From Macrostomum lignano (Eukaryota), in contig NIVC01000001.1 in the NCBI GenBank assembly GCA_002269645.1, positions 1,798,001 to 1,862,000 on the forward strand: a stretch of DNA of 64,000 nucleotides. The letters are read 5' to 3'. A program made the translations under genes and the position numbers. How positions within the stretch are numbered: the first letter of the stretch is position 1; the number at the start of each line of letters is the position of its first letter. Below, in pieces: positions 8,225-60,000 of the stretch. The notes below the pieces were generated by a model that saw only the letters and a list, made by a program, of their open reading frames with translations, was not told where the DNA came from and did not search any database.

Positions 8225-8560
8225 ATTTAATTGCCTCACCTGAAGAATCGCCCATCGGGAGAATCGCTCATCTGGAGAATCGCCCACCTGGAGAATCGCC
8301 CACCTGGAGAATCGCCCACCTGGAGAATCGCCCACCTGGAGAATCGCCCACCTGGAGAACCGCCCACCTGGAGAACCGGCCAACTGGAGAACCGGCCACC
8401 TGGAGAACCGGCCACCTGGAGAACCGGCCACCTGGAGAACCGGCCAACTGGAGAACCGGCCACCTGGAGAACCGGCCACCTGGAGAACCGGCCACCTGGA
8501 GAACCGGCCACCTGGAGAACCGGCCACCTGGAGAACCGGCCACCTGGAGAACCGGCCATA
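8225..8560. repeat. 16-bp minisatellite ggagaatcgcccacct grading into ggagaaccggccacct
   Basis: Visible units; followed by a strong + strand acceptor (cccttcttaccttccag, AG ending at 8578). Confidence 0.95.
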
Positions 8561-9429
8561 ACCCTTCTTACCTTCCAGCTCATTCCGCGCCGCCCTCATC
8601 AATCAATGTCGCCCAGTGCTCCACAATTTGCCTCTAAAAGCAGCAATGAGCCGCAGCCAGAAATCTCCACTGCAAAAGCAAACAGTCCTCAGTGATTGAG
8701 CAGCGGATCTGCTGAAAGAAACTGTAGCTGTGTTGATTTTAAGTCTCCAGGCCTCAGACTGGAGTATTTGCCCGGGAAATGCTCTCCTAGAAGAAGTCTT
8801 GGCAGAGGGCGGGGCTGGCGGCAGTGGAGGCCGCTGGATTTACTCAGTGCATCCGTAATGCCCTGCCCTCCCCTGATGAGGCCGCTCCGTCTCTCTCAGG
8901 CTCTGTTTTGCAACTCATGACAGTTTCTTTAAATGCAGTTATGGGGGCTCAGTTTCCGGCACGCGAAGTGTTTGCCGACCTGAGCTGACTGAGTCCGGCT
9001 GATGGCCTGCCAAGCCCTCAGTGCCGTTTCCAGTTCTTGTCTTATAGAAGAGGAAATTTATCCCCAATTCCGTGGCGTCGCCTTTGCTCCACAGCTGCTT
9101 TTGTTTGTCTGCGCACTCCTCAATGCCGTGTGAGATCCCATTGGCTCAGGCCTCCCCCCCAGCGAATCTCCCCAGTCCCGCTCAGTTTTCCCCAAAAATC
9201 CTCTGCAAGCGAGCAGCCGCCGCAATTCCCACAATCAATCTCTGGCTAGGGGATTTTGTCCCACTTTAAATTCTGGGAGGATAAATTTCCCAACTCAAAG
9301 CCGCGACAGCCGCCGACTTTTCAATCCGCGACAGGACCGACCGGACACCCGGCTTGAGCAGCGGTAAGTCTCGGCTGCAGCGGCCGCTGGCGGGACTTTG
9401 AAGGTCCGGCAGACTGTCGACTCTGCTGC

Positions 9430-10140
9430 TTGTGGAAGCTCTCCATCCAGTCTCTCACTCTCCATCCAGCCTCTCACTCTCCATCCAGTCTCTCACTCTC
9501 CATCCAGCCTCTCACTCTCCATCCAGCCTCTCACTCTCCATCCAGTCTCTCACTCTCCATCCTCTCACTCTCAATCCAGCCTCTCACTCTCCATCCAGCC
9601 TCTCACTCTCCATCCAGTCTTTCACTCTCCATCCAGTCTCTCACTCTCAATCCATCCTCTCACTCTCAATCCAGCCTCTCACTCTCCATCCAGTCTCTCA
9701 CTCTCAATCCAGCCTCTCACTCTCCATCCAGTCTCTCACTCTCCATCCAGTCTCTCACTCTCAATCCAGCCTCTCACTCTCCATCCAGTCTCTCACTCTC
9801 CATCCAGCCTCTCACTCTCCATCCAGTCTCTCACTCTCCATCCAGTCTTTCACTCTCCATCCAGTCTCTCACTCTCAATCCAGCCTCTCACTCTCCATCC
9901 AGTCTCTCACTCTCCATCCAGCCTCTCACTCTCCATCCAGTCTCTCACTCTCCATCCAGTCTTTCACTCTCCATCCAGTCTCTCACTCTCAATCCAGCCT
10001 CTCACTCTCCATCCAGTCTCTCACTCTCCATCCAGCCTCTCACTCTCCATCCAGTCTCTCACTCTCCATCCAGTCTCTCACTCTCCATCCAGTCTCTCAC
10101 TCTCCATCCAGTCTCTCACTCTCCATCCAGCCTCCACTCT
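9430..10140. repeat. 19-bp minisatellite (ccag[c/t]ctctcactctccat)
   Basis: Visible units, downstream of a + strand donor gtaagt at 9364. Confidence 0.95.
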
Positions 10141-56304: not shown

Positions 56305-56380
56305 AGGGAGAGAGAGAGAGAGAGAGAGAGAGAGAGAGAGAGAGAGAGAGAGAGAGAGAGAGAGAGAGAGAGAGAGAGAG
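56305..56380. repeat. (GA)n microsatellite between TGFBRAP1 and GMPPB
   Basis: Directly visible. Confidence 0.95.
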
Positions 56381-57044
56381 ATAGCCTGTTAAAAATCTCT
56401 TAAATAATAACAAACTACCACTAGCAAATGAAAACAGGAGAAATAATAAAATCAACAACGAAGAATCACAATCACGGCCGTTAGCTAGGGGCGTTGATAA
56501 ATTTATTTATTAACACTATATTCATAAATTTCATAACAAAACCTCTGGTTCGCTCACAAAACCTTTGTACTAAAACAATACAAACCGGCATTGATTGCAC
56601 AGAGAATACAATAACGAAAACAGTGACAATTATCTATAACTAAATCAAATGGCTCATTACCTGCTTATTACAACTAAATGAATTAAGTTAAAATTTTTAA
56701 AGACTTCAAAATCAAGTATCGATTTATGCTTCAATAGAAATATGAATCAGTAACACAAGCATATCTGGGTATCTGGGAATTTAAGAACACAGACGGCTTA
56801 ATTAGCCTGCTCATGGGGTATGGCTGCAGACAGGGGGGGGGGGGCTCCCTGTTCATAAATATCGTCTCTCATAATCATCATTCAGTCAATAAATATATAC
56901 AAACAATAGTAAGAGTTTACTAGCTAGCTTTCATTAAAATCTTTTTATTCAAAAATACTGATTCTCTACCAATGTACTACTAATTAATTACAGGTTAAAA
57001 GGGATCATTGTGTATATATGAATATAAACATATGATTTATCTAC

Positions 57045-60000
57045 CTAAGCTGAGGTCTTGGCTGCTTCAGTGGGGGAGCCGGCAGCGGAGACGGCACTGG
57101 ATGAAGTAGAATTGCTGTTCGCTGCTGTTGCTTCGTGAAGCCACGGGCAGCAGCGGAAGTGGGCCGGTTGACCAGTCGACGTCAGCACGAAAGCCAAAGC
57201 TGCCGGAGCTGCGCCTGCCGACGTCGACGGAACGGACGGCGACGGCGATGATTCGTCGAATCGGCGATTGCAAACGGCGCAGCGGGTGGTCTCGGTGAGG
57301 CTGATGCTGGAGCGGCAGTTGGGCAGGCTGGCCAGCTGGTGAGACAGGGTCAGCTGCGGGGACAAAGAAGGTCACGGTGGGCCGTTGCTTGCTACCTACT
57401 GTCGAGGTGACTTTAAAGTTCTTAGGCCGATTTTTGAAGCCGAAACAGGAGCGATTCTCATTGTGAGACTAGGGGCGATTCTCAAAGTGAGACTAGGGAC
57501 GATTCTCATAGTGAGACTATTAGCGATTCTCATAGTGAGACTAGGGACGATTCTCATAGTGAGACTATTAGCGATTCTCATAGTGAGACTAGGGACGATT
57601 CTCATAGTGAGACTATTAGCGATTCTCATAGTGAGACTAGGGACGATTCTCATTGTGAGACTATTAGCGATTCTCATAGTGAGACTAGGGACGATTCTCA
57701 TAGTGAGACTAGGGGCGATTCTCATAGTGAGACTAGGGACGATTCTCATTGTGAGACTATTAGCGATTCTCATAGTGAGACTAGGGACGATTCTCATAGT
57801 GAGACTAGGGGCGATTCTCATAGTGAGACTAGGGACGATTCTCATTGTGAGACTAGGGGCGATTCTCATAGTGAGACTAGGGACGATTCTCATAGTGAGA
57901 CTATTAGCGATTCTCATAGTGAGACTAGGGACGATTCTCATTGTGAGACTAGGGGCGATTCTCATAGTGAGACTATTAGCGATTCTCATAGTGAGACTAT
58001 TAGCGATTCTCATAGTGAGACTAGGGACGATTCTCATAGTGAGACTATTAGCGATTCTCATAGTGAGACTAGGGACGATTCTCATTGTGAGACTAGGGGC
58101 GATTCTCATAGTGAGACTAGGGACGATTCTCATAGTGAGACTATTAGCGATTCTTATAGTGAGACTAGAAACGATTCTCATAGTGAGACTAGAAACGATT
58201 CTCATAGTGAGACTAGGGGCGATTCTCATAGTGAGACTAGGGACGATTCTCATAGTGAGACTATTAGCGATTCTCATAGTGAGACTATTAGCGATTCTCA
58301 TAGTGAGACTATTAGCGATTCTCATAGTGAGACTAGGGACGATTCTCATTGTGAGACTATTAGCGATTCTCATAGTGAGACTAGGGACGATTCTCATAGT
58401 GAGACTATTAGCGATTCTCATAGTGAGACTAGGGACGATTCTCATTGTGAGACTAGGGGCGATTCTCATAGTGAGACTAGGGACGATTCTCATAGTGAGA
58501 CTATTAGCGATTCTCATAGTGAGACTATTAGCGATTCTCATAGTGAGACTAGGGACGATTCTCATAGTGAGACTATTAGCGATTCTCATAGTGAGACTAG
58601 GGACGATTCTCATAGTGAGACTATTAACGATTCTCATAGTGAGACTAGAAACGATTCTCATAGTGAGACTAGAAACGATTCTCATAGTGAGACTAGGGGC
58701 GATTCTCATAGTGAGACTAGGGGCGATTCTCATAGTGAGACTAGGGGCGATTCTCATAGTGAGACTATTAGCGATTCTCATAGTGAGACTAGAAACGATT
58801 CTCATAGTGAGACTAGAAACGATTCTCATAGTGAGACTAGAAACGATTCTCATAGTGAGACTAGAAACGATTCTCATAGTGAGACTAGGGGCGATTCTCA
58901 TAGTGAGACTAGAAACGATTCTCATAGTGAGACTAGAAACGATTCTCATAGTGAGACTAGGGGCGATTCTCATAGTGAGACTAGAAACGACAATTGAAAA
59001 TCCAGGGAACGTGCTCTCTGAACAGAGAAGATATTAATTTTTGTACCGGGCTTGGCCACTACCTCACCCCAACCTACCTGGGCCGCCACGGCCAGTCCCT
59101 TAGCCAGACAGGCCGAGCGTCTCCTATGCAACGCCCTGCGCAGAGCCGAGCAAAGAAACGGCCTCAACGGTCCCACGGGATAATTAGCGGGCAGCAGCGG
59201 CAGGACTCGAGCCCCGTCGGCTGGCACGTCTGGCCGGTTCAACAGACGGACAGCGGAACCGAGGAGGCGATCGCGGTGCTCGCCAGACAGGCAGATGGCC
59301 AGCAGAGCGGACCAATACGGCCCGGGATTGGACTGGGCGGAGCACAACTCCGCCGCGGCGTCGCAGTCGCCAAGATCCAACAGTAGGACGCGAAGTGCGC
59401 CGTCGATGTCGCCGCAGCGGGCTCGCAGCTCGGCCAGATGGGGCAGCAACAGACTGGCGCCGCTGTCGCCGGACCGCGACTGAGGGAAGAATAAGCGTTT
59501 ATTTGTAATTGAATTTAAAACACATGTGTAGTCTACTGACAGTAGAAAAAAAAACATATTTTCGCTAATTTGCTCGTTAAAAATAAAAATGAAAACTTAC
59601 ACTACTAGCAGTAGCAATGTAAACATTTCGAAACGCAAAAACAGGTTGAAGCTTTCAAAACCCTCACCTGCAAAGTCTGCAGTCGGCCAAGCAGAAATTG
59701 AGCCCGATAAACTTTTGATCGACGCAGAAAAGTCAACAGGCGGGCTCTCAATGATGCGGCCGCGTCGGAGTCTGCAAAGACGCAAATATGCACATTTTAA
59801 TAAACAAATCCTTTATTAATAGCTCTCAAGGGTGCTACGGGGCTGTGTGCACTGGCGCACTTTAAGCGCCATTGTCACACAACCGGCGAGAGGCAGTTTA
59901 CTGCCCATTCCACCGACTCACCTGAGCAGGCACACAATCGCGCGGATAAGTGCGCAGTCATACGCACACGCACACACTCATACAGGAGTGTACAGCGGCC

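Follow-up and report, generated by a model that had tools for sequence, protein, structure and literature searches.

Why do tandem arrays that differ in unit length and in most of their sequence carry the same short string? A 64,000-nucleotide stretch of the flatworm Macrostomum lignano genome (contig NIVC01000001.1, assembly GCA_002269645.1; hereafter the window, in whose coordinates all positions are given) raises this question through six otherwise unrelated minisatellite arrays, A to F, that share a core, (AG)AATCGCCC(C). The sharing is not due to chance. Our leading interpretation, held tentatively and at a little under even confidence, is that the six arrays form one locally dispersed minisatellite family united by shared origin and not by function, and the evidence suggests that the core marks that origin and is not an active signal in RNA or DNA. 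Tandem Repeats Finder detected about 40 arrays that together make up 23.8 kb, or 37% of the window, and recovered at the named positions all six motif-bearing arrays listed in an earlier note on this DNA:

Array A, 8237..8558, plus strand: 16-bp unit AATCGCCCACCTGGAG, about 20 copies.
Array B, 14344..15886, minus strand: 26/27-bp unit AATCGCCCCTATTTACAATCCTAGAA(A), about 57 copies.
Array C, 16223..16613, minus strand: 23-bp unit AATCGCACAGAGTCAGCCCCATC, about 15 copies, plus two 33-bp units with AATCGCCT.
Array D, 32536..32846, plus strand: 21-bp unit AATCGCCCTGAACCACACCAG, about 14 copies.
Array E, 35284..36831, plus strand: about 100 subunits of 14-15 bp within higher-order units of 44-217 bp.
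Array F, 57447..58984, minus strand: 24-bp unit AATCGCCCCTAGTCTCACTATGAG, 64 copies.

The array E subunit consists of AATCGCCC and a 6-7-nt spacer that reads CTTATG, CCTCCGR, TCGCAAG or CTCAGG(CTCAGG), and the array F unit with its variants reads AATCG, then CCCC, TTTC, CTAA or TCCC, then TAGTCTCACTATGAG. One member of the family is AT-rich, with a GC content of 36%.

We measured core sharing first with the 8-mer AATCGCCC. The 8-mer has 131 exact matches in the window against 1.44 expected and a maximum of 6 in 100 shuffles. All 131 fall within five arrays, A, D and E on the plus strand (8246-8349, 32559-32839 and 35321-36785) and B and F on the minus strand (14365-15876 and 57473-58968), with no solo copy outside arrays within the window; the sixth array, C, carries AATCGCAC or AATCGCCT in place of the 8-mer. 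Collapsing obviously related arrays left 26 independent minisatellite families among arrays of at least 150 bp with a period of at least 10. Five of the 26 families have the 8-mer in common, a number that none of 2,000 composition-matched unit shuffles equalled (maximum 4, reached once), and the 9-mer AGAATCGCC is common to four families, again matched in 0 of 2,000 shuffles. The claim in the earlier note that 8-mer sharing lies far above chance therefore stands within the window; it does not carry beyond it, where the roughly 22 arrays described below lack the motif.

Outside the core the units have nothing in common. Pairs of arrays share exact strings around the core, such as GAGAATCGCCC, AATCGCCCCTA and AGAATCGCCCCT, and these shared strings are limited to 10-12 nt. 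Similarity among the non-core parts stays at the level of shuffled units (p = 0.44), so the earlier statement that the rest of each unit is unrelated is borne out. Consensus units of B, D and F match the extended core GAATCGCCCC at 9-10 of 10 positions, and those of A and C at only 7 of 10 because A is mostly AACCGGCC and C has AATCGCAC. Among 40 other arrays, drawn from the window and from two unrelated loci, the mean best match to the extended core is 5.83 against 5.87 in shuffled units, and no series of decayed core relatives was found among them; the core arrays are therefore a discrete family and not the remains of a decaying superfamily.

The arrays with a resolved host all fill introns and read the core on the sense strand. 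Two of the host genes were modelled exon by exon:

RPL35 (uL29) gene, 32391..33139, plus strand: exons 32391-32501 and 32870-33139.
ZFYVE21-like gene, 14224..17872, minus strand: exons 17872-17451, 16940-16789, 16202-16072 and 14283-14224.

The spliced RPL35 protein is 100% identical to an M. lignano protein (P0071), and array D occupies 85% of the sole intron (32502-32869), which separates K37 from V38 and shows AGGT at each junction. Downstream, the next called gene, NitFhit, encodes CN_hydrolase and HIT domains; array E takes up 92% of its intron at 35185-36867. In the four-exon ZFYVE21-like model, whose junctions were taken from the sequence, every reading frame closes, and exon 1 was identified by tblastn (E = 1.4e-37). 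Array B fills 86% of its last intron (intron 3, 14284-16071) and array C 67% of intron 2 (16203-16788), and intron 1 holds an unrelated GA-rich 30-bp array at 17010-17403. Array F makes up 89% of the last intron (57354-59077) of a minus-strand Vps39/TGFBRAP1-like gene with a Vps39_1 domain. The genes and strands named in the earlier note (ZFYVE21, RPL35, NitFhit and TGFBRAP1) thus held wherever they could be checked, which covers five arrays. Array A lies between a minus-strand reading frame ending at 7069 and plus-strand EF-hand coding sequence from 11167. It is followed by the plus-strand acceptor-like sequence named in the earlier note, TTCTTACCTTCCAG, which ends at 8578, but no plus-strand exon is demonstrable. 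Tandem repeat forms the bulk of each intron examined.

The core lies on the sense strand in 5/5 arrays with a resolved host, and the host genes lie on both strands. The pattern claimed earlier is therefore present, and it is underpowered, as 5/5 corresponds to a two-sided p of 0.06 (6/6 would give 0.03). Only 340 bp separate arrays B and C, which share a host gene, and 2.4 kb separate D from E, whose host genes are neighbours with the same orientation, so perhaps only three or four independent events are represented; grouping adjacent arrays gives p = 0.125 for four events and 0.25 for three resolved groups. Another family in the same window, with the 28-bp unit GCCAGCCTCCCAGATCCTCAGTTGCTGG, occurs in both orientations, in four alternating arrays at 26401-27015 (plus), 52744-53074 (minus), 60815-61190 (plus) and 63283-63985 (minus), two of which lie around exons of one minus-strand gene. 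General orientation rules, by which the sense strand would be pyrimidine-rich, free of G runs or free of GT, were also considered and discarded; they are contradicted by a G-protein-coupled receptor gene at another M. lignano locus (L006), where inspection of unit consensuses revealed many purine-rich, GGG- and GT-bearing arrays on the sense strand.

Protection of the core within arrays is mixed and not consistent. Array A keeps the 8-mer in 6-7 of its 20 units, the first ones, and the others read AACCG(C/G)CC, that is AACCGCCC or AACCGGCC, with AACCGGCC in about two-thirds of all units. Array F keeps the 8-mer in 13 of 64 units and AATCG in all, invariant in 63/63 units analysed in register, and strong variation is confined to one block, the core CCCC, which reads CCCC, TTTC, CTAA, TCCC or TTAA. 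These four-nucleotide variants differ from one another at several bases together, and the rest of the 24-bp unit is nearly invariant over the 63 copies. In array D the core is almost invariant and 11 of 13 other positions vary, in copies of 14, 41 and 44 units. Pooled over arrays, the number of distinct variant alleles per position is 0.41 for the core against 0.44 elsewhere, and units with a mutated core have been amplified to half or two-thirds of arrays A and F. The core is therefore not required for the amplification or retention of units. Intact-core units are about equally frequent in 20-unit copies and in the 96-unit copy of array E, so growth did not favour them. A second, decayed copy of the core can be recognized in array C (p = 0.016) and in a variant of array D (p = 0.025), weak hints suggesting that longer units may have grown from short core units.

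Further copies of one locus give a view of the age of the arrays. Two additional copies of the RPL35-NitFhit locus, L001 and L002, have a mutual identity of 99.8% and an identity of 91% with the window in non-repeat DNA, and all arrays, D and E included, occupy the same places in the three copies. Array D retains an identical 21-bp consensus in locus copies that are 9% diverged in unique DNA. Copy number varies between these copies, which are duplicated loci and not population alleles, from 14 to 41 and 44 units in D and from about 96 to about 20 in E. Because positions and units are kept across copies with 91% identity, the arrays are old and their units stable, and descent of all six by divergence from one full-length unit is therefore unlikely. 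D and E are present in all three copies, and no presence/absence polymorphism with a target-site duplication was found for either.

The additional locus copies also differ from the window in ways that touch the arrays and their hosts. In L001 (11636-12338, corresponding to 33418-36831 of the window) a (GTCT)n microsatellite directly adjoins array E, and the NitFhit product called there has 371 instead of 504 amino acids, its first exon seemingly deleted in that copy. L001 also contains fragments of a long-terminal-repeat retrotransposon pol gene (168-2554). L002 carries a 2.2-kb insertion (about 2940-5190) found in one of the three copies, with an intact 552-amino-acid open reading frame (3054-4709, minus strand) that encodes a THAP domain and a P-element/THAP9-like transposase, 84% identical to a 900-amino-acid M. 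lignano protein.

We used unrelated M. lignano loci for comparison, namely L004 and L005, around a second RPL35 gene, and L006, which holds the G-protein-coupled receptor gene with a nested THAP9-like element. Together they supply 43 kb of independent sequence and about 22 minisatellite arrays, and nowhere in these loci does AATCGCCC occur. The window has six motif arrays in 51 kb; at that density four would be expected in 43 kb, and the probability of finding none is about 0.02. Since the window was chosen for the motif, this absence shows only that the family is clustered or rare. L004 (14245-15271) and L005 (13742-14453) also hold a 48-bp tandem array inside a called gene (378 and 274 amino acids, no Pfam domain), apparently a coding minisatellite with different unit numbers in L004 and L005.

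We also looked for traces of how the arrays arrived. An all-against-all comparison of 400-bp flanks revealed no sequence shared among the six arrays apart from the physical overlap of B and C, and array edges consist of eroded units in which the CpG has often decayed to give AATTGCC. No inverted partner arrays with a common unit occur in the window; arrays in opposite orientation (A versus B and C, D and E versus F) differ in unit and lie 6-20 kb apart with genes between them. Array-bearing introns share no ends of the kind seen in classical introners, and AGGT stands at both junctions of the D intron only. This intron is a candidate for intron gain. Oyster RPL35 (L127) has introns after Q28 (Q28/E29) and I49 (I49/R50) and none at K37/V38, and the second M. 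lignano RPL35 gene (L004 10001-10384), 73% identical to the first, is intronless. Because the position is not used in oyster, 85% of the intron is array, AGGT flanks both sides and the paralogue has no intron, the RPL35 intron may have been gained by insertion of array DNA, a reading drawn from this single case. Partial sequence resemblances of the core to the transfer RNA T-arm/B-box, the CENP-B box, a THAP site (TxxGGGCA), Helitron ends and hammerhead ribozymes were examined and dropped.

A metagenome scan for three cores in a row returned more than 120 matches, mostly prokaryotic tandem repeats. It says little about M. lignano because any 8-mer in any tandem repeat would match likewise, and none of the matches shares non-array sequence with M. 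lignano. Contigs of a eukaryote in this set contain inverted pairs of 15-17-bp AATCGCCC-core arrays with spacers ACTCCAG, AAACTGCAA or AAAATGTAA:

L022, 400-1400: metagenome inverted arrays.
L082, 5230-6078: metagenome inverted arrays.
L078, 8958-9065: metagenome inverted arrays.
L056, 1-62: metagenome inverted arrays.

The outer ends (GGTRRRGGTGCAA) and inner ends (..CACAGAATYRCCCACAT..AACCGTTTGAT) of these pairs are conserved, and from this arrangement they look like a foldback-type mobile element.

How, then, could six arrays come to share a core and nothing else? Under the shared-origin interpretation, a short core-bearing sequence, about (G)AGAATCGCCC(C)(T), would have been copied into several nearby introns, most likely as pieces of a short-unit array like the 14-15-bp array E in the NitFhit intron. 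The vehicle could have been break repair templated by neighbouring sequence, or a mobile element with ends that later decayed. Each copy would then have expanded by ordinary slippage and unequal exchange, as in most introns of this genome, and settled on its own unit length and its own non-core part, with the core needed neither for upkeep of the array nor for its amplification. Array E, with one core and at least four spacer types, is the kind of source able to seed different units, and the second, decayed core in C and in the D variant is what would be expected if longer units came from short core units. Dispersal of arrays within the window is a fact for other families, namely the four 28-bp arrays and two 19-bp arrays (369-700 and 9439-10141) that are 74% alike and 9 kb apart, and CCAGCCTC is common to the 28-bp and 19-bp arrays. 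The proposal in the earlier note that the core was a common seed for array birth is consistent with the perfect, discrete core, the unrelated remainders and the missing series of decayed relatives. The seeding step and its local nature are what we infer, and four observations weigh against them. The invariance of the D core looks like constraint; all array edges are eroded, with neither a donor-recipient junction nor flank homology to mark a copying step; the local clustering is inflated by ascertainment, the window having been flagged for the motif; and seeding gives no account of the 5/5 sense orientation across genes on both strands.

In descending order of possibility, the remaining rivals are a DNA site recognized by a protein, a decayed mobile element and an RNA element. 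The core could be recognized by a protein that binds DNA, nicks it or initiates recombination, with breaks or stalls at the site starting and driving tandem duplication, much as the human minisatellite core has been read as chi-like or PRDM9-like, or as boxes conserved in satellite DNAs have been proposed to bind transposase-related proteins. A perfect 8-12-mer common to arrays of different unit lengths and unrelated remainders is what such a site would leave behind, the near-invariant D core in copies 9% diverged and the constant AATCG of the 63 F units point the same way, and a precedent exists in oyster and nematode satellites (PMC7492417). We nevertheless consider it unlikely: broken-core units of A and F amplified well, intact-core units are not enriched in the expanded E copy, the window holds no solo sites, the motif is absent from 63 kb of other M. 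lignano loci with their roughly 22 arrays, and a DNA-level hotspot offers no reason for a sense-strand rule. Somewhat less probable again is that the arrays belong to a mobile element (Helentron/DINE-like, foldback/Galileo-like, introner-like or a miniature inverted-repeat transposable element) as its internal or subterminal repeats, with the core bound by its enzyme. Dispersed arrays that have a box in common and otherwise differ are documented for Helentron-borne oyster repeats (PMC7492417), the metagenome eukaryote has inverted core-array pairs with conserved ends, and the RPL35 intron, which oyster lacks at this position, is nearly all array and AGGT-flanked, with an intronless paralogue. 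Against this reading, the six arrays have neither shared flanks nor, within the window, inverted partners with the same unit, AGGT flanks D alone, and the two THAP9-like transposon copies in related loci lack such repeats, while the metagenome match was selected by the 8-mer itself and has nothing else in common with M. lignano.

We regard it as improbable that AAUCGCCC is an intronic splicing enhancer or binding site for an RNA-binding protein multiplied in introns, hence its sense orientation. All five resolved arrays are intronic and sense in genes on both strands, and the arrays stop 20-95 nt upstream of the 3′ splice site. These features come from at most three or four independent events, however, and the RNA-level element suggested in the earlier note is not supported, given core allele numbers like those of the rest of the unit and the amplification of mutated-core units. 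Introns of the same genes are equally filled by unrelated arrays (17010-17403, and a CACT run in GMPPB), 15-100 copies are more than function would need, and the core arrays have no match in Rfam. Lowest in probability, and slightly below the RNA element, stands divergence of all arrays from one ancestral full-length unit in which the core merely survived. The second, decayed core in C and the D variant hints at an older internal periodicity, and B and F have AATCGCCCCTA in common. This possibility, named in the earlier note as one that would undo its claim, is largely refuted by the shuffle-level similarity outside the core, the lack of intermediates among the 40 other arrays and the unchanged D consensus; given that stable consensus, full randomization of the rest beside a perfect core is implausible without constraint. 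More speculative than the mobile-element reading, and only slightly ahead of an RNA element, is the idea that a strand-aware process linked to introns left the AATCGCCC-core arrays as its footprint. Array DNA might insert into transcribed sequence, survive only when oriented so that splicing can remove it and sometimes create introns, at which the RPL35 intron features hint; alternatively, a factor that acts on the non-template strand might have its site in the core.

Shared cores have been known since the vertebrate hypervariable minisatellites, whose Jeffreys core GGGCAGGAXG was later linked to PRDM9-type hotspot motifs. In that set, as in M. lignano, a core of 10-15 nt recurs at several loci whose units differ in length and in the rest of their sequence; strong copy-number differences are seen in M. 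lignano between duplicated copies of a locus. The M. lignano arrays differ from the Jeffreys set in their core sequence, in having one AT-rich member, in the intronic, sense placement of the resolved members and in being known from sequence alone; the human core minisatellites were found by cross-hybridization to a core probe, whereas the M. lignano set was found by reading sequence. Foldback and Galileo-type transposons of Drosophila carry tandem repeats in their long inverted ends, with units derived from a short ancestral unit. Their unit lengths also differ around a common part and their array lengths vary widely, but they form inverted pairs with the same units at element ends, and no such pairs occur in the window. 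From Micromonas, dinoflagellates and Daphnia, introners and recently gained introns with flanking AGGT repeats are known. The RPL35 intron resembles them in its lineage-specific position, its almost complete occupation by array and AGGT at both junctions; introners, however, are near-identical copies in many genes, whereas here just a 10-12-nt core is common and only one of five introns is known to show such features.

Satellite motifs proposed to be recognized by transposase-related proteins are described, in PMC7492417 and its reference 58, for the satellite-like arrays of non-autonomous Helentrons of the Pacific oyster and for nematode satellite boxes. Conserved flanks border the oyster arrays on the left and on the right, together with a microsatellite, subterminal inverted repeats and a palindrome, and both insertion orientations occur (PMC7492417). 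By comparison, the M. lignano arrays share no flanks, and those with a resolved host all run in a single direction relative to the gene. Because conserved boxes are known from human minisatellites and from oyster and nematode satellites, the sharing of a core is not new in itself; the sole part that would be new is the sense-strand rule, which is unproven. A full-text literature search for the 8-mer returned primers only, searches of the literature on M. lignano repeats turned up no shared minisatellite core, and we know of no published account of the origin of tandem repeats in this species. About 15% of the M. lignano genome consists of simple and tandem repeats (PMC5730564). With a perfect core and unrelated remainders, these arrays provide a clean natural case in which to ask whether minisatellite cores cause array birth or mark its origin, a question that is testable in M. 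lignano because the animal is amenable to transgenesis. If the sense-strand rule is true genome-wide, a link between array birth and transcription or splicing would follow, and that would be new; should it fail, the arrays are just another dispersed repeat family. If the strand-aware reading is true, the flatworm would offer a transgenic model for the birth of both minisatellites and introns.

The window contains several other long repeats. Tetranucleotide runs are found at 2965-3763 (GATA, about 200 copies), 4130-4679 (CTGT, about 137), 33418-34495 (GTCT, about 271), 40789-41243 (GATA, about 114) and 54562-55069 (AGTG, about 127), the last filling an intron of GMPPB. At 50382-50978, a 34-bp array with a run of 8-10 C per unit overlaps the 5′ end of exon 1 of a minus-strand NDUFAF5-like methyltransferase gene by about 17 bp and extends upstream from it.

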